From Monocercomonoides exilis PA203 (taxonomy: Eukaryota; Protista; Preaxostyla), in the NCBI GenBank assembly GCA_001643675.2, contig LSRY02000003.1:1488001-1552000 (forward strand): a stretch of DNA of 64,000 bases, given 5' to 3'. Made by a program: the position numbers and the translations under genes. Below the pieces are notes generated by a model. The model was given only the letters and a program-made list of their open reading frames with translations. It ran no database searches and was not told the origin of the DNA. Positions 3,601 to 61,382 of this stretch are shown in pieces; position 1 is the first letter of the stretch, and each line of letters starts with the position of its first letter.

Positions 3601-3604
3601 TGAA

Positions 3605-4891
3605 TCAAAATTTGAAGAAGAAATAATTGAGGAAATTATGAGAAAGTTCATCATTTCCAGTGATTATAGTGTCAACAGCGCTGAAAGTGAGTGTTTGAGA
3701 AGGAACAAATGTTGAGGCGAGGAGGGTGAGAGAGGCATCTTGGGCATCTGTCATGCGAACAAGAGCGAATTCAATTGTTTTGCATGGACTGAGTTGTGTG
3801 ATTCCGCAGAGATCGGTGTTTGTTCCATTATTTGACACGATTTTGAATGTTGTTATGAGAGGGAGCCATCTGTTGAACTCAACATTATCTGCTTCTCCTG
3901 CATTCCACACTCTTTTTGATTCTGTTGTTGACCCGCACTGATTGAATGGGGATTGGGTGATGCTGCTGCCATTAAAGAACACATCATTACCTCTGCCATT
4001 CGTCGCAGTGTTGCCATCGAAGAAGCAGAATGTGATGAAATTTACTCCATTCATCCAAGTGAAGGTTGCATCCAAATAAATACCAGCTCCGCCGCGTGTA
4101 GATGAAGTTGACGTCAATTCATTATTTACAAATTGGCACTCATTGATTGAAAACTGACTTGGTTTGTTTCCTGGTGGCCAACTGAATGTTAATGATCCCG
4201 CAGCATCACCACCTGAGTTTGAAATGCACTTGCATTTAGAAAACAGGAATTGAAAATTTAACTGATTATTATTTAGTCCAAAATACCAACCAGTTCCGCA
4301 CCAATCTGTTATTGAACAACTTTCCACTCTGTTTTCTGAGAATGAATAAACAGAATTTGATTGTGGCCAGCCAACGTAAGCAGCTCCTCCATGAGCAGCT
4401 GAACAACTTGTGAAATTGGATTTTGTGATGTTAACATTCAACAGATATAAGCAATATAACGCTCCACCACTGTATCCGTTTGTTGAACAATTGAAAAATG
4501 AACACGAAGTGATCGATAAATTTGCGTTTGTGCAATTGACTTTCAGAGCACCTCCTTGATCATTTCCGCTGTATGAATCATTCCATTCGCACCACTCAAA
4601 GAGGTAGCTATTCAAATCAGTAAAGGACAATCTACCAGGTTTCGCTCTTTGGGTTTCGGATCCGTTATATTTTACAAGATCATTTGATGAAGATCGTGTT
4701 TGGTGGAGAAAAGAGGCGTTGAAGGCAGAGAGAGAAGTGAATGGGCTGTTGATGGAAGGGAGAATGGTTCCATCGATGGGGTTGTGGATGTGTTTGAAGA
4801 TGATTGAGATGAATGCGAAAAATATTTGGAGGATTTTGTTTGTCAGAAGAACACGCAAAAATAAAAGAGGAGAAAAAAATAGAAATTTCAT
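3605..4891 (-). CDS. Beta-helix-like GGA-motif surface protein family, 5'-truncated cassette type B (428 aa; ATG and hydrophobic N-terminus supplied by the flank)
   Basis: Open frame with repeated GGA(L/I/V) and FxxN/FxxC motifs, FEWCEW, WCGTGW, FITFCFFDGN and CGxxxxxPCxTI. Family homology starts near HNPIDG. Confidence 0.75.
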   Translation of the reverse strand: MKFLFFSPLLFLRVLLTNKILQIFFAFISIIFKHIHNPIDGTILPSINSPFTSLSAFNASFLHQTRSSSNDLVKYNGSETQRAKPGRLSFTDLNSYLFEWCEWNDSYSGNDQGGALKVNCTNANLSITSCSFFNCSTNGYSGGALYCLYLLNVNITKSNFTSCSAAHGGAAYVGWPQSNSVYSFSENRVESCSITDWCGTGWYFGLNNNQLNFQFLFSKCKCISNSGGDAAGSLTFSWPPGNKPSQFSINECQFVNNELTSTSSTRGGAGIYLDATFTWMNGVNFITFCFFDGNTATNGRGNDVFFNGSSITQSPFNQCGSTTESKRVWNAGEADNVEFNRWLPLITTFKIVSNNGTNTDLCGITQLSPCKTIEFALVRMTDAQDASLTLLASTFVPSQTLTFSAVDTIITGNDELSHNFLNYFFFKF

Positions 4892-7800
4892 CGAAACTCT
4901 CTGTTTTTATTTGTTATTATTCTCCTCAGCAAATTTCGACCTTCAATCAACTTTTCCTATTTGTTCGTCATCATCGTTTATTCCTTCTTCACCTTCTTCT
5001 TCTCCTTCTTCTCCTTCATCTTCTCCTTCTTCTCCTTCTTCTCCGTCTTTTTCTTCTTCTCCTCCTTCACTTTCATTATCATCTATGTTATCTTTTTTAT
5101 CTTCATTCTCAAGTCAGTGTGTACAATAATATTATCTGCAATTTCCTTATGACAAAGAGAAACCACAGATTAATTTTCATGTCTTTCTCTTCTCTTTCCT
5201 TCTCCATCTCCTTCATTTTCATGTGCTTCTTCATTTTCATCATCATCATCTTCTTCTTCTTCAACTCCTCCAACTTTTTCAATGCCATCTTCACTCACTT
5301 GGAGTTGAATCGGAATATCACCTATCTGTTGCATTCATACGCTCCAATCAACAGAGACGCAAAATTGAACTAATAATTATTTCACTTGCATTTCTTTGTC
5401 TCAACAATCAATCACTGAACTAGTCTTCATTTTTCATTCACAATTTTGATGATGAAAAAAGGTAATTTGAACGAATTGATTTCATTTCATTAAAATCGTC
5501 TTCTTTTTCATCAACCTTCTTCAACGAACAACAAAAAAATTGTCATTTCCATTTCATTCAACTCCTGTTAAATCCAGGGCCAAGCGTCATCTTTCATTTT
5601 CTTTTCGGAAGCACAAAAGGATTATTTATTCTATCGCAGAATATCAGCTGAAATTATATGTCAACGGAAGTGATTCAATGTCAAACCAAGAAAAGCCAAT
5701 CATCGGGTGCACGATCCATGAAGGTTGCCTCTGCATAATTCATTTTGAGATTGAAAGAATAACATGAAGCAGAAAGAACAAAGTGGGAAAAGATTTTTTT
5801 GAACAAACAGTTGCAGGGATGGTTTTTGAGAGATTTCACAAGGCCACATGCCTTCAACAAGTCGCGGAAGATGAAATGGGAGAGGAAACATTAAAGAGAT
5901 ATAAGTTTTTGAGTGGATGTCAAGGGTTTTTAAAAGCAAGTGATGATATATTCCTCAAATGAAAAGCAATGAAAGCTTATGAATTTTTCCATGATATGGA
6001 AAATGGTGAAAATTGGAAAATGGAAGGAATAATAAAGAAATTAGAAAAAGTTTATCATTTCCTGTTATTTTTATATCAACTGCGCTGGATGTGAGTGGAG
6101 TTGGAACAAATATCAATGGGGTCTGTTGGGGTCTGCCACAGGCATCTGTATTGGTTCCGTTGTTAGAAACGATTTTGTTCTGAGCAATGAGGGGGAGCCA
6201 GCTATTGAACACATCGCTATTAGCTGTATTGTTATTCCACACTCTTTGTGTTGGAGTTGTTGAGCCACAATTCTCAAACGGAGATTGAATGATGCTGCTT
6301 CCATTGAAAAATACATCATTTCCTCTGCCATTTTTTGCAGTGTTGCCATCGAAGAAACAGAATGTGATGAATTTATTTCCGCTCATCCAGTTATATGTTG
6401 CATAACAGTAAATGGCAGCGCCTCCATAATTAGTAGAGGCAGTCAATTCATTTTTGATAAACTGGCAATCATTAACCAAAAATTGACTCGGTTTGTTGCT
6501 TGGAGGATAACGAAATGTTAAAGAACCAGCAGAATCACCACCAGAATTTGCAATGCACTTGCATTTGGTAAACAAAAATTTTCCGTTTGATGGCATGTCA
6601 TCGAGCAAGAAATACCAGCCGGTTCCACACCAATTTGTTATTTTACAACTTTCCACTCTGTTTTCTGAGAATGTCCAAACAGAATTTGATTGTGGATTCC
6701 TTGTGTGAACTGCTCCTCCATGAGCAGCTGAACAGCTTGTGAAATTGGATTTTGTGATATCAATTTTTAACAAACTATCGCAATATAACGCTCCACCATG
6801 ATTTGTTGTTGAGCATTTGCTATACGAGCAAGAAGTGATTGTGAGATTTGCATTAGTGCAAACAACTTGAAGTGCACCACCAGATGAAGATCCACCATTT
6901 GAATCATTCCATTCGCACCATTCAAAGCGATGACTGTTCACATCAAAAGAAGTCAATCTTCCAGGTGTTTTTCTATCAGTTTTAGTTCCAATATACACCT
7001 TTGCAGCATTTGATGGAGATCGTGTTTGGTGAAGGAAAGAGGCGTTGAAGGCAGAGAGAGAAGTGAATGGGCTGTTGATGGAAGGGAGAATGGTTCCATC
7101 GATGGGGTTGTGGATGTGTTTGAAGATGATTGAGATGAATGCGAAAAATATTTGGAGGATTTTGTTTGTCAGAAGAACACGCAAAAATAAAAGAGGAGAA
7201 AAAAATAGAAATTTCATCGAAACTCTCTGTTTTTATTTGTTATTATTCTCCTCAGCAAATTTCGACCTTCAATCAACTTTTCCTATTTGTTCGTCATCAT
7301 CGTTTATTCCTTCTTCACCTTCTTCTTCTCCTTCTTCTCCTTCATCTTCTCCTTCTTCTCCTTCTTCTCCGTCTTTTTCTTCTTCTCCTCCTTCACTTTC
7401 ATTATCATCTATGTTATCTTTTTTATCTTCATTCTCAAGTCAGTGTGTACAATAATATTATCTGCAATTTCCTTATGACAAAGAGAAACCACAGATTAAT
7501 TTTCATGTCTTTCTCTTCTCTTTCCTTCTCCATCTCCTTCATTTTCATGTGCTTCTTCATTTTCATCATCATCATCTTCTTCTTCTTCAACTCCTCCAAC
7601 TTTTTCAATGCCATCTTCACTCACTTGGAGTTGAATCGGAATATCACCTATCTGTTGCATTCATACGCTCCAATCAACAGAGACGCAAAATTGAACTAAT
7701 AATTATTTCACTTGCATTTCTTTGTCTCAACAATCAATCACTGAACTAGTCTTCATTTTTCATTCACAATTTTGATGATGAAAAAAGGTAATTTGAACGA

Positions 7801-9361
7801 ATTGATTTCATTTCATTAAAATCGTCTTCTTTTTCATCAACCTTCTTCAACGAACAACAAAAAAATTGTCATTTCCATTTCATTCAACTCCTGTTAAATC
7901 CAGGGCCAAGCGTCATCTTTCATTTTCTTTTCGGAAGCACAAAAGGATTATTTATTCTATCGCAGAATATCAGCTGAAATTATATGTCAACGGAAGTGAT
8001 TCAATGTCAAACCAAGAAAAGCCAATCATCGGGTGCACGATCCATGAAGGTTGCCTCTGCATAATTCATTTTGAGATTGAAAGAATAACATGAAGCAGAA
8101 AGAACAAAGTGGGAAAAGATTTTTTTGAACAAACAGTTGCAGGGATGGTTTTTGAGAGATTTCACAAGGCCACATGCCTTCAACAAGTCGCGGAAGATGA
8201 AATGGGAGAGGAAACATTAAAGAGATATAAGTTTTTGAGTGGATGTCAAGGGTTTTTAAAAGCAAGTGATGATATATTCCTCAAATGAAAAGCAATGAAA
8301 GCTTATGAATTTTTCCATGATATGGAAAATGGTGAAAATTGGAAAATGGAAGGAATAATAAAGAAATTAGAAAAAGTTTATCATTTCCTGTTATTTTTAT
8401 ATCAACTGCGCTGGATGTGAGTGGAGTTGGAACAAATATCAATGGGGTCTGTTGGGGTCTGCCACAGGCATCTGTATTGGTTCCGTTGTTAGAAACGATT
8501 TTGTTCTGAGCAATGAGGGGGAGCCAGCTATTGAACACATCGCTATTAGCTGTATTGTTATTCCACACTCTTTGTGTTGGAGTTGTTGAGCCACAATTCT
8601 CAAACGGAGATTGAATGATGCTGCTTCCATTGAAAAATACATCATTTCCTCTGCCATTTTTTGCAGTGTTGCCATCGAAGAAACAGAATGTGATGAATTT
8701 ATTTCCGCTCATCCAGTTATATGTTGCATAACAGTAAATGGCAGCGCCTCCATAATTAGTAGAGGCAGTCAATTCATTTTTGATAAACTGGCAATCATTA
8801 ACCAAAAATTGACTCGGTTTGTTGCTTGGAGGATAACGAAATGTTAAAGAACCAGCAGAATCACCACCAGAATTTGCAATGCACTTGCATTTGGTAAACA
8901 AAAATTTTCCGTTTGATGGCATGTCATCGAGCAAGAAATACCAGCCGGTTCCACACCAATTTGTTATTTTACAACTTTCCACTCTGTTTTCTGAGAATGT
9001 CCAAACAGAATTTGATTGTGGATTCCTTGTGTGAACTGCTCCTCCATGAGCAGCTGAACAGCTTGTGAAATTGGATTTTGTGATATCAATTTTTAACAAA
9101 CTATCGCAATATAACGCTCCACCATGATTTGTTGTTGAGCATTTGCTATACGAGCAAGAAGTGATTGTGAGATTTGCATTAGTGCAAACAACTTGAAGTG
9201 CACCACCAGATGAAGATCCACCATTTGAATCATTCCATTCGCACCATTCAAAGCGATGACTGTTCACATCAAAAGAAGTCAATCTTCCAGGTGTTTTTCT
9301 ATCAGTTTTAGTTCCAATATACACCTTTGCAGCATTTGATGGAGATCGTGTTTGGTGAAGG
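4710..9361. repeat. Direct tandem duplication, unit 2326 bp (4710-7035 / 7036-9361), present only in the left arm of P1
   Basis: Identical ORFs offset by 2326 (4719/7045, 5540/7866, 5955/8281). The right arm has one copy. Confidence 0.95.
5955..7217 (-). CDS. Chimeric family member (420 aa): N-terminus of type B fused in frame to the variable domain of type A
   Basis: The N-terminal ~60 aa are identical to 3605-4891 and the remainder is identical to 8281-10368. Crossover lies within AAAGAGG at 7036-7042. Confidence 0.8.
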   Translation of the reverse strand: MKFLFFSPLLFLRVLLTNKILQIFFAFISIIFKHIHNPIDGTILPSINSPFTSLSAFNASFLHQTRSPSNAAKVYIGTKTDRKTPGRLTSFDVNSHRFEWCEWNDSNGGSSSGGALQVVCTNANLTITSCSYSKCSTTNHGGALYCDSLLKIDITKSNFTSCSAAHGGAVHTRNPQSNSVWTFSENRVESCKITNWCGTGWYFLLDDMPSNGKFLFTKCKCIANSGGDSAGSLTFRYPPSNKPSQFLVNDCQFIKNELTASTNYGGAAIYCYATYNWMSGNKFITFCFFDGNTAKNGRGNDVFFNGSSIIQSPFENCGSTTPTQRVWNNNTANSDVFNSWLPLIAQNKIVSNNGTNTDACGRPQQTPLIFVPTPLTSSAVDIKITGNDKLFLISLLFLPFSNFHHFPYHGKIHKLSLLFI

Positions 9362-10368
9362 AAAGAGGTGTTGAAGGCAGAGAGAGAAGTGGATGGGCTG
9401 TTGAGGTTGGGGAGGATGGCACCATCGATGGGGTTGTGGGTGTGTTTGAAGATGGTTGAATGGATGAAGAGGGATGAGTGAAGAGAGAATGAGGGAATTG
9501 TATTGGTGTTAGTATTGGTGGAAATGGAAGTGGTTGAGGTGGTTGAGATGAATGAATTGAGTGAGTGGGAGGGAAGGGATGGAAGAGATGGATGGGATTG
9601 GGGAGATGAGATGTTGGAGAAGAGGGTGTTTGAGAGATGGAGATTGAGGTGGATTTGGAGGTGAGGATGGGATTGGTGATGGATATGGAGAGGGGAAGGG
9701 GAAGAGGAAGAGGAAATCGAAGGGGAAAGGGAAGGGGAAGGGGAAGGGGAAGAAAAAAATGATGATGAGGATGAGGATGAGAAAGATGAAGGAGAAGGGG
9801 AAAGGGAAGGAGATGGAGAAGGGGAAGGGGAAGAGAGGGAAAAAGGAGAAAAAAGGAAGGGCTGGATGAGGGAGACGAAAGAGGAGAAGGAGGAGTGGGA
9901 GATGGAGAAGGAGGCAGGGATTGGGGAGTGGGCATGTGGGAGGAGATTGTTTGGGGTGGAGAAGAGGGGGAAGGAGAGGATGGCAGGTTGGTGGGTGGTG
10001 AGGGAGAAGTTTGTGAGGGCGAGGGAGGCATGGGCAGAGAGGAAGAGGGGGCAGTGGTGGTGGTGGCTGTTGGTGAGTGAAGGTGGGTGGATGGTGCAAG
10101 TGGAGGAGCAGATGGAGGCAGCGGAGTGGTGTTGGGCAGTGAGGAGTGGACAGCCACTGAGAGGGATGATGTTGAGATGGGTCACACACAAGGAGGTGTT
10201 GATGAGGGCGAGGCTTGTTTGAGCACCACAGATGTGATTGCCAGATGCATGTTCCACCTTGTCTGAGTGAGCGCCTCTGATGATGCTGTTTGCGATATCT
10301 TCTCCATGAACGAGATTTATGGTGAGGAGTGCAGCGAGTATCTGAGCTAATACTGTGATCCTAATCAT
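8281..10368 (-). CDS. N-terminally complete family member type A: signal peptide, Ser/Pro/His-rich linker, GGA-motif beta-helix domain (695 aa from the ATG)
   Basis: ATG at 10368 gives MIRITVLAQILAALLTINLVHG, a signal-peptide-like start. Uninterrupted ORF next to the P1 centre. Confidence 0.85.
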   Translation of the reverse strand: MIRITVLAQILAALLTINLVHGEDIANSIIRGAHSDKVEHASGNHICGAQTSLALINTSLCVTHLNIIPLSGCPLLTAQHHSAASICSSTCTIHPPSLTNSHHHHCPLFLSAHASLALTNFSLTTHQPAILSFPLFSTPNNLLPHAHSPIPASFSISHSSFSSFVSLIQPFLFSPFSLSSPSPSPSPSLSPSPSSFSSSSSSSFFSSPSPSPSLSPSISSSSSPSPLHIHHQSHPHLQIHLNLHLSNTLFSNISSPQSHPSLPSLPSHSLNSFISTTSTTSISTNTNTNTIPSFSLHSSLFIHSTIFKHTHNPIDGAILPNLNSPSTSLSAFNTSFLHQTRSPSNAAKVYIGTKTDRKTPGRLTSFDVNSHRFEWCEWNDSNGGSSSGGALQVVCTNANLTITSCSYSKCSTTNHGGALYCDSLLKIDITKSNFTSCSAAHGGAVHTRNPQSNSVWTFSENRVESCKITNWCGTGWYFLLDDMPSNGKFLFTKCKCIANSGGDSAGSLTFRYPPSNKPSQFLVNDCQFIKNELTASTNYGGAAIYCYATYNWMSGNKFITFCFFDGNTAKNGRGNDVFFNGSSIIQSPFENCGSTTPTQRVWNNNTANSDVFNSWLPLIAQNKIVSNNGTNTDACGRPQQTPLIFVPTPLTSSAVDIKITGNDKLFLISLLFLPFSNFHHFPYHGKIHKLSLLFI
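9690..9840 (+). repeat. Polypurine G-run tract (GGGGAA-type repeats) encoding the Ser/Pro linker; G-quadruplex/H-DNA potential on the template strand
   Basis: GGGGAAAGGGAAGGGGAAGGGGAAGGGG at 9722-9749. Homologous tracts at ~13805-13955 (minus) and 60714-60850. Confidence 0.7.
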
Positions 10369-11719
10369 TTTCAAACTGTGATGCAATTTGATTGGAATGA
10401 ATATGAATGAAGCCTTAATTGGTGGAGAGGGGAGAAATGCAATGTGAAGAGAAAATAGAAGAGGAAATCTTGTGAGTCATTGCTTATAATCTGAAATATC
10501 TGCTTTTGTGAATATGAGTATCAATTTATTTCTTGTTTGCATTCGTTTCTCTCGTGTGCACTCAATTTTTTATTCGGAAATTAAATAGATTTTTTTTGAA
10601 ACAATTATTTTTCATCTGAAGAATTCATATTGATGAATAATTTGATGATTTATTTTCATGAAAGATGTAATTTCGATATTGCAGATAATGCCCCAACAAT
10701 CTCCTCTATTAACTTGAGAAATGGTTGAAATGTATGTATTTGGAAATGGGGAAATCTGAAAAAAATATTGGCATCTCAAATAAATACATACTGTTTGGAA
10801 TTACAACCAATGACTGACAAACAACAGTCGGCGATTTAAAAAAATATATATTTTTTAATCAAAAAACTATAATCCACCGAAACATTTTTTCTTCTTTTTT
10901 TGAAATCCACAAATTTGATAATTAATCTGTGAAATACAAAATTCAACTTTGTTGTTAATGAATACCAAAAAAGGAAAACAAGTGTGTGAGAAAAAAATAA
11001 CATTTATAATGGATAATGAATAAACGAACAACGAAATGCATTTGTGGTGCTTCAAATATCTGAGGAGCTTTCGAAACAGTTGAGACTATTATCATACATA
11101 TTATTATTCAAAAGTTATTTTCTCAAAAAATCTTATCAGAATTTCTTTGATGAATAAATCTTCTGAGAAAATCAGTTTTATTTTGGTTGAATGTCAGAAA
11201 CGGAGTTTGATTTCATGCATTGATAATACTCGTGAAATTGATGAAAATTTTGAGTTTCTTCTTCAATTTTTTAAAAAACAAACCTGAGAACAATATTTCT
11301 TTCAATAAACATTCACTTTTTCATCCCAAATGAAATTCTGGAATGAATGAGATAATTGGAGATAATTGGAGATTATTTTTGAAATCATAACTTTTTTCGG
11401 TGAGAGTATTTATTTTTTCAATAATTGTTCTTTATATTAACAATTCAATAACTGTTTTTGCACCATTTATTAAATAAAATTGTTGAACTTATCTTTCTAA
11501 ATTATTCAAATTCAGTATTTTTTTCACAAAAATTACTTTGAGATGAATTGGTTTTTGGCTGAGTGACAAAAAGTGATGAAGAATTAATATTCAGTCAACA
11601 TTTGAAAAAAGGATGAGAAATTGAACCTCGATTTTTATTGTTTGTGAATGAACATAAAAAATTTCTGATTTTTCGGAAAAAATTCATCTTCATGAAAATC
11701 AGATAATTTTCAAATGAAT

Positions 11720-11930
11720 ATTCCTCACATCGTTAAATTGTGCACAATACTATCAAGAAAAGATATTGATATTTAAATATATTCTATTAATCAATTAATA
11801 ATACATAAAGAATTCCGTATGTGCATTGATAAATTTATTCAGTTATGAATATTTTATGTTTTCAGTATTTTGTATTGTTGCAAATTATTCATTTCGATTC
11901 ATAAATGTGTAATCGAACAATGTGATGTGA
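11720..11930. other. Non-palindromic spacer (loop) of P1, ~210 bp
   Basis: Arm pairing stops at 11719/11931. Gapless homologue at 62720-62931. Confidence 0.9.
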
Positions 11931-13281
11931 ATTCATTTGAAACTTATCTGATTTTCATGAAGATGAATTTTTTCCGAAAAATCAGAAATTTTTTATGTTC
12001 ATTCACAAACAATAAAAATCGAGGTTCAATTTCTCATCCTTTTTTCAAATGTTGACTGAATATTAATTCTTCATCACTTTTTGTCACTCAGCCAAAAACC
12101 AATTCATCTCAAAGTAATTTTTGTGAAAAAAATACTGAATTTGAATAATTTAGAAAGATAAGTTCAACAATTTTATTTAATAAATGGTGCAAAAACAGTT
12201 ATTGAATTGTTAATATAAAGAACAATTATTGAAAAAATAAATACTCTCACCGAAAAAAGTTATGATTTCAAAAATAATCTCCAATTATCTCCAATTATCT
12301 CATTCATTCCAGAATTTCATTTGGGATGAAAAAGTGAATGTTTATTGAAAGAAATATTGTTCTCAGGTTTGTTTTTTAAAAAATTGAAGAAGAAACTCAA
12401 AATTTTCATCAATTTCACGAGTATTATCAATGCATGAAATCAAACTCCGTTTCTGACATTCAACCAAAATAAAACTGATTTTCTCAGAAGATTTATTCAT
12501 CAAAGAAATTCTGATAAGATTTTTTGAGAAAATGACTTTTGAATAAAAATATGTGCGATAGCAGTCTCAACTGTTTCGAAAGCTCCTCAGATATTTGAAG
12601 CACCACAAATGCATTTCGTTGTTCGTTTATTCATTATCCATTATAAATGTTATTTTTTTCTCACACACTTGTTTTCCTTTTTTGGTATTCATTAACAACA
12701 AAGTTGAATTTTGTATTTCACAGATTAATTATCAAATTTGTGGATTTCAAAAAAAGAAGAAAAAATGTTTCGGTGGATTATAGTTTTTTGATTAAAAAAT
12801 ATATATTTTTTTAAATCGCCGACTGTTGTTTGTCAGTCATTGGTTGTAATTCCAAACAGTATGTATTTATTTGAGATGCCAATATTTTTTTCAGATTTCC
12901 CCATTTCCAAATACATACATTTCAACCATTTCTCAAGTTAATAGAGGAGATTGTTGGGGCATTATCTGCAATATCGAAATTACATCTTTCATGAAAATAA
13001 ATCATCAAATTATTCATCAATATGAATTCTTCAGATGAAAAATAATTGTTTCAAAAAAAATCTATTTAATTTCCGAATAAAAAATTGAGTGCACACGAGA
13101 GAAACGAATGCAAACAAGAAATAAATTGATACTCATATTCACAAAAGCAGATATTTCAGATTATAAGCAATGACTCACAAGATTTCCTCTTCTATTTTCT
13201 CTTCACATTGCATTTCTCCCCTCTCCACCAATTAAGGCTTCATTCATATTCATTCCAATCAAATTGCATCACAGTTTGAAA

Positions 13282-17710: not shown

Positions 17711-17714
17711 TTCA

Positions 17715-37102: not shown

Positions 37103-37385
37103 TAATATTATTCAAAAAGAAAATTTTTGTTGTCTTGTTTTTATAAGTTGAATAATAGTTATAAAACTGATTGAAATGTGGATCATCAAGATTTTTAAAT
37201 GAGAGAATGCGATTTGAAGAAAATGAAACATCAATACACATTTATAAGATTTTTGAATAACAATCACGATCATTTTTAATTCAAGTTTTTCCTCATATTT
37301 GATTCATTTGTGAATAGATAATTTTCGTGTTTCTGCTATTTAAATAACAAAAAATCTTATATCTTCAAATGGATTCTTCAATTTC
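37103..37385. other. Non-palindromic spacer of P2 (283 bp)
   Basis: Pairing ends at 37102/37386. No visible similarity to the P1/P3 spacers. Confidence 0.85.
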
Positions 37386-50205: not shown

Positions 50206-51268
50206 TTATTTCTCGTGTATTCCAATGTTGCACAGCAGGCACGCAAAGTGAAAGCATTGTTCAGCATTTGTGAAAGGCGCCTCTCTGAAAAAAATCTCTG
50301 TCCATGTCTCCGCCTTCACAAACCTCAGCCCACTCATCCCAAGCGCCTCCACAACCAGTGGCGCCATCGCTTCTTCCAGCTTCCCCCGGTTCTCTTTGAT
50401 TCTCTCCACAAACTCTCTGTGCGCTGCCGGATACCCGCCTTTCACTTCATTCACATCACCTTCCTCTGCCTCTTCCCGCTCCTCCAGCACCACCAGCACA
50501 ATCTCCTCAGGCAACAGAACCATATCCTCCATCCTCAACCAAACCGCATCCATTCTCTTATCCACTTCACGCACTTCAATCCCTCGCCCCATCATTTCGT
50601 CGTCCAGTTTCACCTCCACACGCCTCGACTGTTGTGATCTCCATATCTGCAGCGACGGGTCAAACAGATCGTAGATCGACGGGAAAGCATTCGCGTCTGG
50701 CGCTGCAAAGATCCGCTTGCTCCCCGATTTCGTTCCCACAGACGCTGCAAGCGACGGAAGCGGTGCCACCAGCGGAACCGAAAGCATCGTCGAAAGCGCC
50801 ACATCGTGTGCACACACAACACCCCCATACAGCACCGCCCGCCGAGCCACAACAAATCATTCGAAGCGTCTGCAGCGCCCGTGGCGACAGCAGCTGCTGC
50901 AGCGACAGCGGCATGTGCCGCCCATACACCCCAGCCGCCTCTGGCACCACAATCCGCAGCCGCCTCTCGATATCATCCATCGCTCCTGCAGACGTGTATG
51001 ACGCAGCCACAGCCGACGCATCCGAAGGGTCAATCGCAGGTGCTGATGATGGCTTATCATCTCCTGTCACTTTCTTCTCTTCGCTTCTCCGCCTCCGGAA
51101 TTCTTTAGCAGACGAAGAAGACGAAGGCGCTGAGCGAAGAGACGACTGCTGCGCTGCCCTGGAAACAAGAAGCTTTTTGAAATAGGCTTTCGTGTCATGC
51201 AACAGCTCCTCTTATGACACAAACACAACATCCACATTCGGATCAGAAAGATCAACCAGCTGTGAAAG
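50206..51268 (-). pseudogene. IQCH: Mirror copy of the IQCH-like fragment
   Basis: ORFs identical to those at 23027-24023, with the same stop and frameshift. Confidence 0.7.
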
Positions 51269-51908
51269 CTCTCCGTTCTCAAGTGATGGAAACAGATGGA
51301 ACAGGGTTTCTTAAAAAGTTGAGTTGAAATGAGAAGATGAAGAAGTTATGCTGATGATGAATGAATAATCGTTCTGGTCTTGCATCAGATGAATTAGATG
51401 AGGAATATGTGAAAAGATCAATTCAGAAATGGAAAAAGCTGCAGTTGCTTTCATCTGCTCATTCCGTTGGATTAAGGCAAAAATCCCACAGAAGCCATGA
51501 GGCATCAGATACTTTCCGCAAAATGTTTGTCATTCCTTTCTCAAAAGATGAAGTCAATTTCGCTCTAACTCCAGACGATAAATATCTTCTCTGGCTTTGT
51601 GTGAGTTTTCTTGCCTGCCTTCATTTCCCTTTCTCACATAAAACACATTTTCATCTTCATAACAAAATATTCTTGCTCAAACAAGAATCTTCGTTTCTTC
51701 TTCATTTTTCTCTTTATCTCTCACACTGATGCAGAATGCGAAGAAATACAATTTGATGAAGCAAATTTTGATGATGAAGCAGAAGAAGTTGTATAATATG
51801 TTGTTGATATGTTTGCAGGAGAAGGAGAAAAAGAAGGTCATTGAATGAGGTTATTGAAGGCATAGAATTGTGAATGCAAATAATTACAAATAAAAACAGT
51901 GAGTCTCG

Positions 51909-53174
51909 TTGAAATTTCTATTTTTTTCTCCTCTTTTATTATTGCGTATTCTTCTGACAAACAAAATCCTCCAAATATTTTTCGCATTCAATTCAACCAT
52001 TTTCATTCACACCCACAACCCCATCGATGGTGCCATTCTCCCCAACCTCAACAGCCCATCCACCTCTCTCTCTGCCTTCAACACCTCTTTTCTTCACCAA
52101 ACACGCTCTTCATCAAATGCTGCAAAGGCGTATATTGGAACTAAAACTGATAGAAAAACACCTGGAAGACTGGATTCCTTTGATGTTAACAGTCATCGCT
52201 TTGAATGGTGCGAATGGAATGATTCAACTGGTGGATCTTCTGCAGGAGGTGCACTTTGTGTTTCTTGTACAAATGCAAATCTCACAATCACTTCTTGCTC
52301 ATTTAACAATTGCTATTGCACAGGAAATGGTGAAGGAGGCGCATTATACTGCATATATTTGTTAAAAGTCAATTTTTCAAAATCCAACTTTTTGAACTGC
52401 CAGGCGAGACACGGAGGGGCTGTTTATGTAGGGTATCCTCAATCCAATTCTGTTTGGACATTCTCAGAAAACAGAGTGGAAAGTTGCTCAATAACAGATT
52501 GGTGTGGAACTGGTTGGTACTTTTCCCTCTATTACATGCCCTCAGATGCTCAATTCCTGTTTTCCAAATGCAAGTGCATCTCAAATTCTGGAAAAGATTC
52601 TGCTGGTTCTTTAACATTTTATAATCCTCCACAAAATAAACCAAGTCAATTTTCAATCAATGAGTGCCAGTTCATTAATAACAAATTGACTGCTTCTTCG
52701 ACATATGGAGGTGCTGCAATGTGTTTTTATCCTCCTTTTTCATGGATGGATGGAGTAAAATTCATCACATTCTGCTTCTTCGATGGCAACACTGCAACTA
52801 ATGGAAGGGGAAACGATGTGTTCTTCAGTGGCAATGCCATATCTCAATCTCCTTTCCAGCATTGTGGATCAACAACTTTAACAAAAAGAGTATGGAATAA
52901 TGGAGAAGCAGACAATGAAACTTTCAATGGCTGGCTCCCCCTCATCGCCCAGAACAAAATCGTTGCAAATGGTGGAACTGATGCTGATGCCTGTGGCAGA
53001 CCCCAACAAACCCCATGTGCTACCATCGAGTATGCCCTCACTGGCTTCATTTCCCTCCTCCAAGACGCCTCCCTCACCCTCCTCACCTCAACATTTGTTC
53101 CAACTCAAACACTCACCTTCAGCGCGGTTTACACAAAAATCAATGGAAATGGTAACTTTTTTCTGATTTCGTGA
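51909..53174 (+). pseudogene. Mosaic cassette type G (421-aa open frame, TTG start)
   Basis: Core essentially identical to type E, N-terminal loop from type A, leader like type B. Confidence 0.75.
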
Positions 53175-54720
53175 GAATTTCTTCCATTTAGTAATTTTGA
53201 GCATTTTCCATTTCACAGAAAAATCCTTAAGCTTTCATCTTCTTTTCATCAGAAGTTTATTTTTTTTCAATCAATCTTTAATCTCCGCTCATATAAAAAC
53301 ATTTCTTCGTCATTTCTTCATCTATTTTCTTTTCTTCATCAAATGAAAATAAAGCTCATTGTTAAAAGCAATTTTCCATTTTCGTTTCTTCGATCATATC
53401 AGAAAGTTCTTCAAAAACATTTATTTCCTCGACTTTCTTATTCCAACTTGTTCTTATCCAATTAGAGCAAGAATCTCATACAATTTTTCTCCAAATATGC
53501 CTTTTCCTCTCAATTCCTTTTCTTCCTCATTTCATTTTCAATAATCTGTTGTGGTTTTGAAGTTGTGAAATCTGCCGAAGGCTATTTTGAAACCCATCCA
53601 TTTCATAAAAGAATTGTTTCAAAGCTCTTTCTGTTTTCAGCTCATGCTTCAGCTTCCAAATGAAAAAGGCGAAATCGTCCTCCTTTTCTGATTGTGTTCC
53701 TCCTTTTCTGCTTTTCTCCATTCAAAATCACCTCTATTGCTATTTAATTTCAGCTGATGTTTCATCCCAGAACAAATGTTTGCCTTGGCTTTCTGAATAG
53801 TAAATTGATGGCAATGTTTGACTTCGAATTCCACGGGAGATGCATCTGAAGAAAATTGTAACATTTTTGTTGCTCATTGAAGAAGGCGTTGAAGAAGAAC
53901 TTAACAAGAATGAAAAAACTGATATTGGCCCAAATCGACTTTTTGTCACAAATAACTTGAATGGAAATACAAATCATCCAGCTATTGATATGTTGAGAGG
54001 AGGAAATGCAAATGAAACAATTTTTGGCTCATGTGGTATTTCTGCTGACAGAAAATGCATAATATTTCCGAATGAGGATGCTCTGCCCCAATGTCAAGCG
54101 AGAGGGAGCGGCAAAATAGTCAAAGATCGACGAATAAGACGAAGAAGATAGTAAAAAAGGAAAATAAAAATGGAAATAATGAAATCCATGAAGAACCATA
54201 TGATTTTTCCGATGAAGAATATGAGAAGGTTCCATATGACGTTGCAGACTGAATATTATATCTTACTTAACAAGTTGACTTCACAAGGAGATAATAATCC
54301 AAATTGCAATATTTATGACAGATACTTTCAAGCCAATCAATAGAATTACATTCCCTCAAAGTCAATTGACTCCCTTTTTGCAAGATCCCTGCCTTTCCCT
54401 TCGCTAACAGAAAATGATGCTGTTCTGTCAGCGCTAAAAGTTCAAATTAATCAAATGCCTAATGATGATATCAGCAAAGAAGGCGAAGAATACGAAGAAG
54501 AATACGAAGGCGAAGAAGATGCAAAAGTCGTAGAAGAAGCCGTGTGATATCATAACTCAAAATAAGAAGAAGACAATGAAGACGATGAATTAGTAGAATG
54601 AGTTGATCGAAGATTGAGAATTGTGAAGATAAATGAAAACAAATAACAAAGGAGATGTTCGAAGAAATCGTTAATTTCCTGTTTTTCAACACTGAGTTCT
54701 TCTGACAAATAAAATCCTCC

Positions 54721-55677
54721 AACTCATCCCTCTCAATCCACTCAACCCTCTTCCTCCACGCCCACAACTCCATCGATGGCGCCATCCTCCCCGACCTCAA
54801 CAGCCCATCCACTTCTCTCTCTACCTTCAATGTTTCTTTTCTCAGCCAAACACGCTCTTTATCAAACGCTGCTGTGAAATATAACGGATCCGAAAATCAA
54901 AAAGCGAAACCTGGAAGATTGTCCTTTACTGATTTGAATAGCTATCTCTTTGAATGGTGTGAATGGAACGATTCAACTGGTGGATCAAGTTATGGTGGTG
55001 CACTTTATGTTAGTTGTACAAATGCAAATCTCACAATCACTTCCTGCTCTTTTGAAAATTGCTCAACAAGTGATCATGCCGGAGCGTTATATTGTGAATT
55101 GTTGTTAAATGTGAACATCGCAAAATCCAATTTCACAAGTTGTACAGCTGCCCATGGAGGGGCAAATTGCATAGCTTGGCCACAGTCATCCTCTGTTTGG
55201 TCATTCTCAGAAAACAGAGTGGAAAGTTGTTCAATCACAAATTGGTGCGGAACTGGTTGGAATTTTGGACTAAATAATAATCAGTTAAATTTTCAATTCC
55301 TGTTTTCCAAATGCAAGTGCATTTCAAACTCAGATGGTGATGCTGCGGGATCATTAACATTTTATTGGCCTCCACAAAATAAACCAAATCAATTTTTAGT
55401 TAATGATTGCCATTTCATAAACAACAAATTGACAAGTTCATCAACTTCCTATGGTGGCGCTGCGCTGTGTTGCACAGCAACTTATTCCTGGATGAGCGGG
55501 TTTAAATTCATCACATTCTGCTTCTTCGATGGAAACACCGCCAAAAATGGCAGAGGAAACGATGTTTTCTTCAGTGGCAATGCCATATCTCAATCTCCAT
55601 TTGAGAATTGTGGTTCAACAACCCCAACAAAAAGAGTGTATAATAATGGACAATCTGAAAACGCTGAAAAAAAATGA
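54721..55677 (+). pseudogene. Mosaic cassette type H (5'- and 3'-truncated)
   Basis: Frame open from 54706 after a TGA. The 267-aa ORF combines segments of types B, C, D and E. Confidence 0.75.
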
Positions 55678-55689
55678 CCGATTCTAGCT

Positions 55690-58150
55690 TTTCTTTCCAA
55701 ATTCTCCAATGAAATGCTTTTCCTGCTTCCATCTCTTATTTTTTCTTTCTCTATCATCTCCTCTCCTCTCATTCCTTCTTTGACTCATTTATTCAAAACT
55801 TTTGATTTCTTCTGCATTTCGTCATTTACCCCTATTTGTTATTTCTTCATTCAAATTTATCCTCTGTTTATCCAAATACATTTCTTTGTGTAAATTCCTG
55901 TTTCTTCTCTTCTCAAATCAAATTTCCTTCTCAAACTACATTTCCAAATATCTTCTTCTTTTCATTCAAAAAAAAAAATCTCTTCAATTCTCTCAATCAT
56001 ATTTCCATTCATCATGCTCTCTAAACTCTCCTAACTATCTTCATTCTCATCATTCTATTTATTTTCTTTTCTATTTTCTTTTCTATTTTCTTCTCGTTTC
56101 TGTTCCTGTTTCATTTCTTCAAAAATATCTTTCTTCATTTCTCTAACAATCTCTTGTGAAGACGCAAAATATGAAGAAATTCAATCAAATGGCGTGAATG
56201 AAGAAAAAGAAGAAGAAGAAGAAGAAGAAGAAGGAGAAGGAGAAGGAGAAGAAGGAGAAGAAAAAGAAGAAGAAGAAGAAGAAGAAGAAGAAGAAGAAGA
56301 AGAAGAAGAAGAAGAAGAAGAAGAAGAAGAAGAAGAAGAAGAAGAAGAAGAAGAAGAAGAAGAAGAAGAAATTGTGCGATATGAAATGACATCTATACAT
56401 TGGAAGAAGAAGATGATGATGCAGGAATTGCACAAGATGATCGGCTGCTGAAAAATGTGAAGGCGAATGCTAATAAATAAAAACAAAAATTTTCGCAGAA
56501 TTAATCTTTTCCTTCTTTCTTCTTCCGTTTTTGTATCTTTTCCTGCATATAAGATCCTCCAAATCCATCAAACATTCAGCTCTATCATCCCCCTCGCCAA
56601 CAAAAAATTGGAAAGCTATGTAAATCCCTTTTTCATTCCGTCTCTTCTTCTTTAACATCCCCTCTTTCTCAAAAAAATCTTCTTTCCTCAAAAATAATTC
56701 TTCGCCAAAGGTTAATGCCAGGCATCTTCGAAATATCTTGAATTTCATCAATCTTCATTTCATTTTTCTTCCTTGCTTTTCTTTTTATTCTTCAAAGCCA
56801 TATAATCCCTCGTTCTTTCAACATCCTGAACAAAAAAATAAATAATCACTTCAAAAAAATAATAATAACAGCAAACCTTCAGAACCTATTTTTAAAGGCA
56901 ATTTTCTGTTTTTTATCCCATTGGCAACTATTTTCTTCAATTCAATTTCATTATTCCTTCCTTTTTCAAGTGTTTCATCATCTGATTCGCAAATCATCCT
57001 TTCCATCAGTTGTTTCTCCATCAAATGCATCGATTTCTTGCTCTTCTGAAAAATGTGAGATTTATGTATTTAACTCAAATTCCATCTTTCTCATTGAAAA
57101 ATATCCTTGTTTTTCGTCTGAAAATATCATCTCCAATTCCCTTCCCAATCCCTTCACCCTGGGCACTTTCCATATGAATTCGCTCTCCCAACTCGGTGGT
57201 CACCCTGCACAACGAGATATCCCGCTTTAGTTCATTTTCATTCTTTTCCGCCTCCTGCCCTGAAAACAACACAAAAACAATCAACAGATAAATATTCATA
57301 TATAGAAAAATTAATAAATACCAAACTGCGCATCGATTGCATTTTGTTAAACACACTCATTTCCACAGCCATCATCATTCAAAAAATAAATCAATCTCTT
57401 TATTTCAGTCTCAGAATGGTTGAATACAGCATGGAATGCATCTCCTCAAAATACATTGTATGTCTCACTGGAGGGTCTTTTCAGTTCGAGCACATCGTGG
57501 TGGATGTCCAAAGGGGTTTTTTCTGTTTTTGGCATGATCATCTCCTTTAATAATATTCTCAACGATACAAAACAGTATTTGAGGTTTATCTCATCAACAC
57601 CAGGCACATGAGGGATATGGGGCAGAGAAGAGATGGAAGAATATTTTTTGTGGCAGGGGGTGGGAGTTGAGTGGTTTTTGGAATGTTAATATTTCAAGAG
57701 GGGTTTTTGAATGAAAGAAATTCTGAGACAAAGGGGTGGGGAAGAGTGGGTGGGGATTTTGAGAAGATAATATAGTAAATATGTAGAGAAGTGGCTGAGG
57801 ATGGTGAGGAAGATATTTGAGACAAATTGGAGAAATGGAATTTGGAAGAGAAGGAAAAGAGGGTAAAAGCTTGAAAGAAGAGGAAAATTGAGAAATGTTG
57901 AAAGGCTTGAAAGAGGAGCGCTTTTATGAGAGAAGAAAGGAGGTGAGAAGATATTTTGGAAGAGACTGTGAAAGGTGAAGAAAATGAATGGATTGATATT
58001 TTCTGAGAATATTGAGGGCTGAACGGAAGAGGAAAATAACAAAGAAAAAAAAGAAAGAACTGAGAGATATTTTCATTTTCTATTTCCGAGGGGAAAGGAA
58101 GGGAAATTGCCCAAAGGAATCAATGATTTTTGGAAAACCAACATTGTTGA
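55690..58150 (-). pseudogene. Diverged paralogue of the degenerate gene/repeat at ~1-2400 and 18900-21337
   Basis: Collinear similarity (ILQIHQTFSSIIP; IRKSSFPSVVSPSNASIS; MVEYSMECI frames). Confidence 0.5.
56200..56370 (+). repeat. (GAA)n microsatellite; pure 35 units at 56266-56370
   Basis: Direct inspection. Confidence 0.97.
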
Positions 58151-59294
58151 TTTACAAAAATCTATTGCAATAGATTTTGCGATGAGGGTTTTCATATTCC
58201 TCTTGAAGGCAACTTATCAAATACAATGTTTTATCTCATCGGCAACATCATATAAATCACTCTAACATATTTCCACGGAAAAATCATTGAAGTTTTTGAG
58301 ATTTCTCCATCTCCACATGCATATTCTGCTTCTTCTTCTTCTCACTTCGTATCGGATGCTCGTATGTCGAGTGCATTTATACAGCTCAATTCGGCAGAGT
58401 CGCTGAATTGAATAAAAAATTATTTCATTTACTTCCCTTCATCTCTTCAATCAATCACTGAACTAGTCTTCATTTTTCATTCACAATTTTGATGATGAAA
58501 AAAGGTAATTTGAACGAATTGATTTCATTTCATTAAAATCGTCTTCTTTTTCACCAGCCTTCTTCGACGAACAACAAAAAATTGTCATTTCCATTTCATT
58601 CAAATTCTCATCGAATTCAGGGCCAAGCGTCATCTTTTATTTTCTTTTCGGAAGCACAAAAGGATTATTTATTCTATCGCAGAATATCAGCTGAAATTGT
58701 ATGTCAACGGAAGTGATTTAATATCAAACCAAGAAAAGCCGATCATCGGGTGCACAATCCATGAAGGTTGCCTCTGCATAATTCATTTTGAGATTGAAAG
58801 AATTCACAGAAAACAAAAGGAGCAGGGCAGAAGACGTTATTTGGAACGAACGATTATGTGGATGATCTTCGAGAGGTTGCATTATTACATGCGCCTTCAA
58901 TATATCGCAGAAGATGAAACAAAGAGAGAAAGCGGTTGTTTCAGGAAGATCAATAATCGAAGGATAATTCTATGAAATAAGTGCGTCTGCAGCGCTCAAA
59001 AAGGGAGAAATGGGAGTGATAAAAGAAACAGATATTTTTGAAGAGATTGTTGCTATGCTTGAAGAAATGTATTTTGAAGATACGACAGCAATGAATCTTT
59101 TTTCATGAGCTTAATTTGTAGTTGATGGAGAAGAAAAATTAGATGAGGTAATGACGAAGAAATATTTTTGTCTTGTTGATGTTATGGATTTCTGAAAAAA
59201 ATAATGATGATATATACTCCAATTGAAAAAGCTATGATAGCTTATGAATTTTTCTATGATATGGAAAATGGTGAAAATAAGAAAATGGAAGGAA

Positions 59295-61382
59295 TCATAA
59301 AGAAATCAGAAAAAAGTCATTATTTCCTGTTGTTTTTGTGTAAACCGCGCTGAAGGTGAGTGTTTGAGTTGGAACAAATATTGAGGAAAGGAGGGTGAGA
59401 GAGGCGTCTTGGAGGAGGGAAATGAAGCCAGTGAGGGCATACTCGATGGTAGCACATGGGGTTTGTTGGGGTCTGCCACAGGCATCAGCATCAGTTCCGC
59501 TGTTAGAAACGATTTTGTTCTGAGCAATGAGAGGGAGCCAGCCATTATACACTGCATTGTCAGCCGTTCCTTGATTCCACACTCTTTGTGTTGGAGTTGT
59601 TGAGCCACAATTCTCAAACGGAGATTGAGTGATTGCATTGCCACTGAAGAACACATCGTTTCCTCTGCCATTTGTGGCAGTGTTTCCATCGAAGAAACAG
59701 AATGTGATGAATTTGAACCCGCTCATCCAGGAATAAGTTGAAAGAAAATAAATGGCAGCACCTCCATATGTCGAAGAAGCAGTTAATTTATTGTTTATGA
59801 ATTGGCAATCATTAACAAAAAATTGATTTGGCTTATTTACAGGAGGATTTGAAAATGTTAGAGAACCAGCAGAATTACCACCAGAATTTGCAATGCACTT
59901 GCATTTGGAAAATAGAAATTGAAAATTTGTATAATCATTTCCTAGAGCAAAATACCAACCAGTTCCGCACCAGTTTGTTATTGAACAACTTTCCACTCTG
60001 TTTTCTGAGAATGTCCAAACAGAATTTGATCGTGGACTTGTAGCATGGACTGCTCCTCCATGGGCAGCTGTACAGCTTGTGAAATTGGATTTTGTGATAT
60101 CAATTTTTAACAAACTATTGCAATATAACGCTCCGGCATGATCGCTTGCCGAACATTTGTTGAACGAACAAGAAGTGATTGTGAGGTTTGCATTTGCACA
60201 ATAAACATAAAGCGCTCCTCCATGGACAGCTCCACCAGTTGTATCTTTCCATTCGCACCATTCAAATTTGTGGCTGTTCAGATCAAAAGAATCCAGTCTT
60301 CCAGGTTTCGCTCTTTGAGATTCAGTTCCAACATGTACAACAGCAGCATTTGGTGAAGATCGTGTTTGGTGAAGAAAAGAGGCATTGAATGCAGAGAGAG
60401 AAGTGGATGGGCTGTTGAGGTTGGGGAGGACAGCACCATCGATGGGGTTGTGGGTGTGGATAAAGATGGTTGAGTGGATGGAAAGAGATGAGCGAAGGGA
60501 GAAGGAGGGGATTGAATTGGTGTTGGTATTGGTGTTTGTGGAAGAGAGGGAAGAGGAAGAGGTGGTTGAGGTGAATGGATTGAGTGAGTGTGAGGGAAGG
60601 GATGGAAGTGATAGAGGGGATTGGGGAGATGAGATGTTGGAGAAGAGGGTGTTTGAGAGATGGAGATTGAGGTGGATTTGGAGGTGAGGATGGGATTGGT
60701 GATGGATATGGAGAGGGGAAGGGAAAGAGGAAATAGAAGGGGAAAGGGAAGGGGAAGAGGAAGAAAAAGAAGAGGATGAGGATGAGGATGAGGAAGATGA
60801 AGGAGAAGGGGAAAGGGAAGGGGAAGGAGAAGGGGATGGGGAAGAGAGGGAAGAAGGAGAAAAAAGGAAGGGCTGGACGAGGGAGACGAATGAGGAGAAA
60901 GAGGAGTGAGAGATGGAGAAGGAGGCAGGGATTGGGGAGTGGGCATGTGGGAGGAGATTGTTTGGGGTGGAGAAGAGGGGGAAGGAGAAGATGGCTGGTT
61001 GGTGGGTGGTGAGGGAGAAGTTTGTGAGGGCGATGGAGGCATGGGCAGAGAGGAAGAGGGGGCAGTGGTGGTGGTGGTGGCTGTTGGTGAGGGAAGGTGG
61101 GTGGATGGTGCAAGTGGAGGAGCAGATGGAGGCAGTTGAGTGGTGTTGGGCAGTGAGGAGTGGGCAACCAGCGAGGGGGATGATGTTGAGATGGGTCACA
61201 CACAAGGAGGTGTTGATGAGGGCGAAGCTTGTCTGAGCACCACAGATGTGATTTCCCGATGCATGCTCCACCTTGTCTGGGCGAGCGCCTCTGATGATGC
61301 TGTTTGCGATGTTCTCTCCACGAACCAGATTTATGGTGAGGAATGCAGCGAGTATTTGAGCTGATACTGTGATCCTAATCAT
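59295..61382 (-). CDS. N-terminally complete family member type A2: signal peptide, Ser/Pro/His linker, mosaic variable domain
   Basis: ATG at 61382 gives MIRITVSAQILAAFLTINLVRG. Intact ORF next to the P3 centre. The N-half is close to type A and the C-half differs in its loops. Confidence 0.85.
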   Translation of the reverse strand: MIRITVSAQILAAFLTINLVRGENIANSIIRGARPDKVEHASGNHICGAQTSFALINTSLCVTHLNIIPLAGCPLLTAQHHSTASICSSTCTIHPPSLTNSHHHHHCPLFLSAHASIALTNFSLTTHQPAIFSFPLFSTPNNLLPHAHSPIPASFSISHSSFSSFVSLVQPFLFSPSSLSSPSPSPSPSLSPSPSSSSSSSSSSSFSSSSPSLSPSISSFPSPLHIHHQSHPHLQIHLNLHLSNTLFSNISSPQSPLSLPSLPSHSLNPFTSTTSSSSLSSTNTNTNTNSIPSFSLRSSLSIHSTIFIHTHNPIDGAVLPNLNSPSTSLSAFNASFLHQTRSSPNAAVVHVGTESQRAKPGRLDSFDLNSHKFEWCEWKDTTGGAVHGGALYVYCANANLTITSCSFNKCSASDHAGALYCNSLLKIDITKSNFTSCTAAHGGAVHATSPRSNSVWTFSENRVESCSITNWCGTGWYFALGNDYTNFQFLFSKCKCIANSGGNSAGSLTFSNPPVNKPNQFFVNDCQFINNKLTASSTYGGAAIYFLSTYSWMSGFKFITFCFFDGNTATNGRGNDVFFSGNAITQSPFENCGSTTPTQRVWNQGTADNAVYNGWLPLIAQNKIVSNSGTDADACGRPQQTPCATIEYALTGFISLLQDASLTLLSSIFVPTQTLTFSAVYTKTTGNNDFFLISL

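Follow-up and report, generated by a model that had tools for sequence, protein, structure and literature searches.

Which genes, if any, draw on a large store of gene fragments kept in inverted repeats? The question is raised by a 64,000-nucleotide (nt) stretch of the Monocercomonoides exilis PA203 genome (the window; contig LSRY02000003.1, here C25:1,488,001-1,552,000), in which 15 copies of one surface-protein gene family lie in giant palindromes and only three carry a leader. An earlier, sequence-only reading took the leader-bearing copies to be complete expression sites, fed one-way by the remaining copies as silent cassettes. Our analysis points to a different arrangement: all 15 copies, including the two leader-bearing types A and A2, are N-terminal fragments of a receptor of ~3,050 amino acids; the copies recombine among themselves in all directions; and together they resemble a slowly working reserve of receptor variation, not a one-way switch.

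M. exilis is a commensal, bacterivorous flagellate of the chinchilla gut (PMC12308965), whose nanopore genome was assembled with Canu from Oxford Nanopore Technologies (ONT) reads into 101 contigs, with a largest full chromosome of 2.54 Mb (PMC8767320). The genome amounts to 82.3 Mb, and C25, its largest chromosome, to 2,548,433 bp. The window sits at the start of an array of about 1 Mb (approximately C25 1.48-2.55 Mb) that takes up some 40% of this chromosome. The analysis covered 204 kb of this array together with three full-length receptor loci, all in one assembly; coordinates without a contig name are those of the window.

Receptor fragments and their full-length relatives

A six-frame scan of the window for the motif HNPI[D/N]G finds exactly 15 copies, the number first reported, or 10 different ones if each pair of palindrome twins is counted once. 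Beyond the window, the variable domain that follows the motif has at least 126 genomic matches, many of them within frames of 2,000-3,100 codons. Two of the three full-length loci are intact single frames of ~3,050 amino acids (aa), and the third has an interrupting stop. The full-length form has a signal peptide, a long ectodomain, one transmembrane helix (hydropathy 3.7, residue ~2592), and a kinase-like tail, an architecture found in the full-length relatives only and in none of the copies in the window. The tail matches PF07714 (E 5.6e-11) over profile positions 160-258 only; an intact set of VAIK, HRD, and DFG catalytic motifs was not found in it (HRD reads LRD, and DFG was not seen), so it is probably a pseudokinase. 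These full-length parents belong to the tyrosine-kinase-like family, the largest in a genome with 332 predicted kinases, for which an overlap with unclassified repeats has been noted (PMC6759080, PMC8767320).

The distribution of the remaining receptor parts identifies the window copies as fragments. The next ectodomain segment is complete at 83 places, 76 of them in frames of >2,000 codons and only 2 inside C25 1.48-2.55 Mb, and none of the 147 best genome matches to the kinase tail falls within the array. Because the next segment lies nearly, and the tail wholly, outside the array, every window copy is an N-terminal fragment. The two types that had been regarded as complete genes stop near residue 700, short of the transmembrane helix and kinase-like tail of the ~3,050-aa members, and the at least 76 full-length receptors outside the window, which the sequence-only reading missed, are the more natural beneficiaries of any stored variation. 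Fragments begin at receptor residue 1, ~280, or ~320 and end at ~630, ~660-710, or ~1,070. The copies in the window are as follows ("headless" copies lack the leader and the N-terminal half).

3605 to 4891, minus strand, motif at 4786: copy B, headless, receptor residues ~321-710, with an in-frame ATG and a hydrophobic 35-aa leader derived from the shared 5' flank
5955 to 7217, minus strand, motif at 7112: hybrid copy, in the left arm only, with a B-type 5' flank and first ~70 nt, then the A variable domain and 3' flank
8281 to 10368, minus strand, motif at 9438: copy A, a 695-aa A-type gene with signal peptide, Ser/Pro/His-rich N-terminal half, and predicted beta-helix, without transmembrane helix or kinase; a truncated receptor form
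13282 to 15361, plus strand, motif at 14204: copy A', mirror of A with an identical variable domain, its N-terminal half spread over two frames in the assembly
16424 to 17710, plus strand, motif at 16529: copy B', mirror of B with a 19-nt patch (4 of 4 sites) matching copy D
21188 to 22288, minus strand, motif at 22249: headless copy at the junction of palindromes P1 and P2, residues ~321-630
29312 to 30504, minus strand, motif at 30465: copy D, headless, residues ~318-704, with a one-base homopolymer deletion in this arm only
31470 to 33723, minus strand, motif at 33696: copy C, long and headless, residues ~322-1070, with one frame break in this arm only
34302 to 35570, minus strand, motif at 35372: copy E, mid-start, residues ~280-636
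38655 to 39923, plus strand, motif at 38853: copy E', mirror of E
40511 to 42754, plus strand, motif at 40529: copy C', intact mirror of C
43649 to 44911, plus strand, motif at 43757: copy D', intact mirror of D
51903 to 53174, plus strand, motif at 52014: copy G, a headless patchwork whose exact matches measure 352 nt (to C), 224 nt (to copies ~90 kb off), and 75 nt (to a full-length gene)
54706 to 55677, plus strand, motif at 54763: copy H, headless, residues ~315-629, at the left end of P3
59295 to 61382, minus strand, motif at 60452: copy A2, a second 695-aa A-type gene, with an identical mirror just beyond the window

The A type is a subfamily. Seventeen copies, at 86-100% identity, have its leader; all are located within C25 1.49-2.44 Mb, and none has a frame longer than 836 codons. 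Its upstream region is present 12 times, always within that span. Within the window, the leader and ~310-aa N-terminal half are indeed restricted to A, A', and A2, as first described; the tie to palindrome centers does not extend to the genome, since head-to-head pairs (at P1 and P3) account for only 4 of the 17 copies and the rest are not so placed. At P2, P4, and P5, the copies next to the center are headless or mid-start ones. The observation that the two types share a near-constant N-terminal half (proportion of nonsynonymous differences [pN], 0.02-0.07) and have distinct variable domains also stands, although their completeness does not. Over the first 48 codons, A and A2 differ at a proportion of synonymous sites (pS) of 0.21 and a pN of 0.055, with 7 synonymous and 6 nonsynonymous changes (binomial P ~0.02) and 8-9% divergence upstream. 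The leader is thus under purifying selection, and this constraint makes the A type look functional, plausibly as a secreted receptor-head form of ~700 aa.

The variable domain is predicted to be a right-handed beta-helix. A structure model built from a 27-sequence alignment reached a predicted local distance difference test score (pLDDT) of 79 and a predicted template modeling score (pTM) of 0.78, against a pLDDT of 34 from a single sequence, and its top structural matches are all right-handed beta-helices (tailspikes and polysaccharide lyases; Z up to 19.2, root mean square deviation of 3.3 over 222 residues). Foldseek by itself gave no match at E 0.001, a Pfam search of the whole window proteins returned no family, and PF02415 matched 6 of the 27 copies weakly (best E 0.009) without reaching the Pfam gathering score. 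Of its 286 positions, some 70 vary, and these lie in loops adjoining GGA, GTGW, and SLTF motifs; the framework has a ratio of nonsynonymous to synonymous substitution rates (dN/dS) of 0.13, and the loops have a pN of 0.45. Profile searches find full-length relatives in M. exilis only and repeat-level matches elsewhere, including Streblomastix strix. A shared beta-helix fold shows no function; for a bacterivorous gut commensal, bacterial surface glycans would be a reasonable guess at the receptor ligand.

Receptor genes also occur near the array. Between C25:700,000 and 1,320,000 lie eleven with kinase-like tails that are 91-100% identical, a recent local expansion adjoining it, and a 2,957-codon frame of a more distant receptor-like family is situated at C25 ~1,454,400-1,463,200 on the plus strand (L020:6361-15234), 25-34 kb to the left of the array start.

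Headless copies and their flanks

In most headless copies a noncoding flank adjoins at one common 5' junction, and in many a longer flank adjoins at one common 3' junction; examples of the two flanks are the following.

51699 to 51968, plus strand: shared 5' flank, ~280 nt, noncoding, abutting most headless copies at a single ancestral junction
58470 to 59319, minus strand: shared 3' flank, ~0.8-1.1 kb long and 65-87% identical between copies, beginning at a single junction close to receptor residue 710

Copies of the 5' flank are largely confined to the C25 array, a few being on C31, C48, C80, and C98, whereas the 3' flank is a repeat dispersed across many contigs. An origin of either flank as decayed receptor coding sequence was rejected, as profiles gave no significant match to the full-length genes. 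On its opposite strand, the 3' flank (58470-59319 and homologues) resembles decayed Glu/Lys-rich coding sequence with many stops. The same 5' flank also precedes a 1.5-kb noncoding unit that is not homologous to the headless cassettes (860-2400, plus strand; 18900-20460, minus strand; 56560-58100, plus strand; also in pieces L013 and L016), with 85-87% identity among its copies and no long frame. These units were considered as decayed cassettes and rejected, their alignment scores being those of shuffled sequences.

Set against these flanks, the headless cores retain a protein-coding signature while the sequence around them decays. Mean divergence among the 5' flanks is 26%, and ~30 gap positions are found for every 170 nt; across 286 codons, none of the 16 distinct headless cores contains a stop, their length changes all keep the frame, and their framework dN/dS (0.13) equals that of the other classes. 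About 6 stops per core would be expected had the cores aged like their flanks, and their 145 private changes include none (P ~0.001 if neutral). The long open frames initially reported for the headless copies are real (300-740 open codons). The frame breaks in A', D, and C are each confined to a single arm, and those within cores are changes of one base in a homopolymer; we infer that they are sequencing errors, and the split in A' is probably a homopolymer or nanopore error in a simple-repeat stretch.

One way to account for such copies without any use for them is as a passive by-product: birth-and-death junk that stays readable only because some 100 functional genes overwrite it and that gives nothing back. 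We regard this as rather unlikely. Eroded 3' ends at several positions, and stops in some dispersed fragments, are what it would lead one to expect; the lack of stops among the private core changes is not, nor is the fact that the variable domain alone is archived, with shared junctions, while none of the 147 best kinase-tail matches lies in the array.

Another account makes the headless copies genes in their own right, encoding small beta-helix proteins from upstream or internal starts or by trans-splicing. Here the description of the 12 copies as beginning at or just before the motif, mostly without an in-frame ATG and often right after a stop, needs correcting: copies 4786, 7112, and 16529 (B, the hybrid, and B') possess a hydrophobic leader whose in-frame ATG lies 35 codons upstream, copies 35372 and 38853 start ~45 codons ahead of the motif, and an upstream stop lies within 6-19 codons in four headless copies only. 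The three leaders suit independent expression, as do short gene models that begin at an internal Met in the official annotation of C25 (MONOS_14957 and MONOS_11836) and the presence, in four RNA runs of one study, of 33-42% of sampled words from window positions 3600-11900. The ATG, however, is not conserved among homologous flanks, conservation upstream of the internal Met equals that downstream, and in 9 of the 12 headless copies of the window neither a Met nor an AG occurs between the upstream stop and the motif, which speaks against an own start or splice acceptor at that place. The RNA word share, for its part, fits the A mRNA alone (0.34-0.43) or partial cover of more, one-third of the A words being shared with other copies. 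Altogether, we find independent expression quite unlikely. Splicing of cassettes to upstream exons of their own, raised by the sequence-only reading as a challenge to itself, is not indicated, given the missing AG in those nine copies. Alternative exons of the Dscam or protocadherin type were also rejected: there is no conserved acceptor and no conserved GT at the 3' junction, and the full-length genes are single long frames, although sites inside the core are possible.

Palindromes and exchange among copies

Self-comparison confirms that the copies are housed in palindromes, three of them in the window (centers at ~11,823 for P1, ~37,115 for P2, and ~62,826 for P3) and five in the 204 kb.

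10369 to 13281: P1 core, AT-rich, with the A-type upstream region in both arms and a ~180-bp unique spacer at 11734-11916
21359 to 52898: palindrome P2, with arms of ~15.3 kb that are near-identical except at the ends and in small patches, and a ~930-bp central spacer at 36651-37580 containing an end resembling that of a miniature inverted-repeat transposable element (MITE)
61383 to 64000: P3 core, with the A-type upstream region and a ~190-bp spacer at 62731-62921; P3 extends from 54722 to ~70919

Arms match exactly over kilobases, interrupted only by homopolymer indels of one base and by sharply bounded substitution clusters, whereas cores differ between palindromes (P1 and P3 are 90% identical, P2 and P4 87-93%), each with its own spacer. 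Because the cores have diverged in this way, the palindromes appear to be old structures whose arms co-evolve through arm-to-arm conversion, not fold-back reads. An origin as nanopore fold-back or assembly artefacts is worth raising for a Canu assembly of ONT reads (PMC8767320) in which arms differ by homopolymer indels, and small contig C98 (positions 2585-10202) appears to be a near-exact repeat of palindrome P4, either a redundant assembly piece or a real extra copy. We hold such an origin to be highly improbable: arm differences include sharp substitution patches with identifiable donors and one whole extra unit, the homologous cores are 7-13% diverged with their own spacers, and the five palindromes end inside cassettes.

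Most of the palindrome ends examined fall in or beside a cassette (21359-22270, 52014-52898, and 54722-55660), and copy 22249 is shared by P1 and P2, which suggests that recombination between cassettes sets palindrome limits. A ~257-bp MITE-like element with inverted ends lies in the P2 core (36634-36890) and recurs in the P4 core and 19 kb to the left of the window; its end motif is also present in the arms of P1 and P3, ~450 bp from the center (11370/12262 and 62373/63261), and a role for the element in palindrome origin is possible. The P3 arms, otherwise identical, differ by a patch of 45 substitutions at 57222-57722, in the noncoding 1.5-kb unit, indicating that conversion reaches noncoding repeats too. 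The interior of P2 is GC-richer (43-48%) at 22550-29000 and in its mirror at 45200-51700; it contains short frames only, no gene was identified there, and a portion is repeated close to the right end of P5.

Recombination within the variable domains is evident in their mosaic structure, and the proposed gene conversion is borne out by long exact tracts and arm-specific patches. Identical tracts far longer than expected by chance occur in 81 of 351 copy pairs, in all class combinations but one, and reach 352 nt between copies that are otherwise 84% identical. Distances in the first and last thirds of the domain are nearly uncorrelated (0.05).

The palindrome arms serve as a built-in polarizer of conversion events, which makes the question of direction directly testable. 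Treating arm twins as before/after pairs, three events could be polarized. In the first, a 19-nt patch in B' matches D, a cassette-to-cassette conversion with B' as the recipient. The second, in P5, is a 308-nt patch that sets a pair of headless twins apart. The third is the hybrid copy at 5955-7217, which joins the 5' end of B to the A domain within a 2,326-bp tandem unit, the signature of an unequal crossover; A was here the donor to a headless position. All three altered or created headless copies, and none affected A or A2, indicating that cassettes act as recipients. A and A', like A2 and its twin, show no differences; with two A-type pairs against nine others, this sample has little power to exclude transfer into A-type genes. 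The concentration of these events at headless positions, and the fact that headless copies are at least as mosaic as the A type, are in keeping with passive overwriting of fragments, although the longest exact tracts run from headless copy to headless copy, which by itself would not purge stops.

These data bear directly on whether A and A2 are expression sites diversified by frequent one-way conversion from silent cassettes, in the manner of vlsE or msp2. In favor are the constrained A-type leader with its own conserved upstream region, the leaderless open cassettes close by, the presence of inverted repeats, a feature of vls too (PMC11499132), and a 106-nt exact tract that A2 has in common with a neighboring copy. 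Against this, there are 17 A-type copies rather than a single site, the twins are identical, and conversion changes the cassettes themselves, with the A domain donated to the headless hybrid (7112). Nor do the central segments have a near-exact cassette donor: among the best-scoring genome matches, none exceeds 96% identity to the central 183 nt of A beyond its own copies (the two best, at 95-96%, lie outside the array), and none exceeds 86% to a 301-nt segment of A2 beyond its twin. Exact tracts of ≥60 nt cover 17% of the A core and 28% of the A2 core among the copies read, and the core fraction in exact tracts is 0.24 for the A type and 0.36 for headless copies, such that the A type is not more mosaic. 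One-way switching thus seems very unlikely, and a role of A and A2 as complete expression sites is not supported; exchange in all directions, the outcome that the sequence-only reading had set against its own proposal, is what is found, as far as a genome can show.

Shared patches also extend to the full-length family. Headless copies and full-length genes are linked by exact tracts of 60-78 nt, and the loop at 41000-41089 in copy C' is matched at 100% in four places of the array and at 97% in three full-length receptors 0.5-0.7 Mb away, identity falling to at most 91% after 13 matches.

Outside the repeats, single-copy ordinary genes stand as islands in the array at C25 ~1,561,000-1,580,000 (pieces L007-L010) and in L012; a ribosomal protein L10-like frame and a DDE-transposase-like frame were identified in the islands by eye.

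A proposed receptor-head archive and its relation to known systems

The reading that we put forward, and to which we give an even chance of being right, is that receptor head domains are stored in an unprogrammed, recombining archive, which both supplies and draws on many putatively expressed genes. The sequences show that a few ancestral truncations of a gene for a ~3,050-aa receptor fixed the common 5' and 3' junctions around the outermost beta-helix domain, and that the resulting units multiplied through tandem and inverted duplication, with arm-to-arm conversion keeping palindrome arms identical. Variable domains recombine patchwise in all directions among headless and A-type copies, with loop alleles held in common with full-length receptors. 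Ordinary homologous recombination, without a dedicated machine, may transfer loop alleles between the archived fragments and expressed genes, the putative recipients being the full-length receptors and the ~700-aa secreted A-type form. The archive would in this way renew the receptor binding surface over evolutionary time, and selection on the products would keep the fragments readable.

Several points weigh against this reading. Sharing between the archive and full-length genes is unpolarized, so that direction is not read from it; the three full-length genes are top matches to A, which biases the sharing upward; the 204 kb read are a part of the ~1 Mb array; and passive overwriting by functional genes could itself give open frames. 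The permutation test for tracts leaves out the alternation of conserved and variable blocks and is lenient for short tracts, which are therefore overcounted. A bolder version, in which the ~1-Mb array is a dedicated donor library that rewrites the ligand-binding beta-helix of receptor pseudokinases and of the secreted ~700-aa form at a pace that counts during the life of a host infection or culture, as an anticipatory, conversion-based recognition repertoire of a single-celled eukaryote that operates like a cassette system with many recipients, strikes us as unlikely.

Exact look-up of the A, A2, B, and hybrid proteins in a public protein collection found them absent, and most array copies are missing from the public protein set. 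Literature on oxymonad gene conversion, Pmp proteins, and receptor-kinase pseudogene reservoirs yielded no description of the array or locus, and the searched passages of PMC6759080 and PMC8767320 make no mention of head-only fragments, palindromes, or conversion. The array accounts for part of what has been classed as "unclassified repeats" in M. exilis.

Elements of the arrangement recur in several known systems. Y-chromosome palindromes are old, with arms kept near 100% identical by arm-to-arm conversion while spacers and paralogous palindromes diverge. Those of M. exilis have arms that are likewise kept alike, but they are much smaller (12-31 kb), serial, and end inside gene fragments. The variant surface glycoprotein (VSG) archive of Trypanosoma brucei and the pseudo-V donors of chicken immunoglobulin (Ig) serve defined expression sites, with a mutator enzyme in the case of Ig, and many VSG donors are broken. 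Like VSG (PMC13233330) and Ig pseudo-V genes, the present array is a eukaryotic set of partial N-terminal variable-domain copies near a chromosome end, with mosaics formed by segmental conversion; unlike them, its cores are almost all open, and its apparent target is a receptor pseudokinase family.

The likeness to Borrelia vlsE/vls (PMC11499132) lies in leaderless open copies, a conserved framework with variable loops, segmental conversion, and inverted repeats. In vls, transfer is one-way, from contiguous cassettes into a single expression site to which they are ~90% identical; here there are 17 leader-bearing short genes plus at least 76 full receptors, and the cassettes are ~75-85% identical, separated by flanks, and engaged in all-direction exchange. 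Of the features that unite vls, pilE/pilS, and msp2, leaderless open donors are present here, and a single complete site and one-way transfer are not. Anaplasma msp2/p44 (PMC11946796, PMC2789410) similarly has about a hundred or more truncated donors, clustered, with a variable region between conserved ends; that system switches within an infection through a single expression site, whereas here recipients would be many and the protein is a signaling receptor instead of an outer-membrane antigen. Chlamydia Pmp and metamonad Pmp-like proteins share GGA(L/I/V) and FxxN motifs and the beta-helix fold with the variable domain, but in place of the autotransporter barrel of Chlamydia Pmp there is a single-pass receptor with a kinase-like tail.

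Known donor archives serve the immune-evasion antigens of pathogens and the antibodies of vertebrates; in this case, what is archived is the tip of a signaling receptor, and the organism is a harmless commensal protist. If the fragments do feed receptors, this would show that a single cell can maintain a library that recombines and serves recognition (of prey bacteria, for example) and not, as in those pathogens, hiding.

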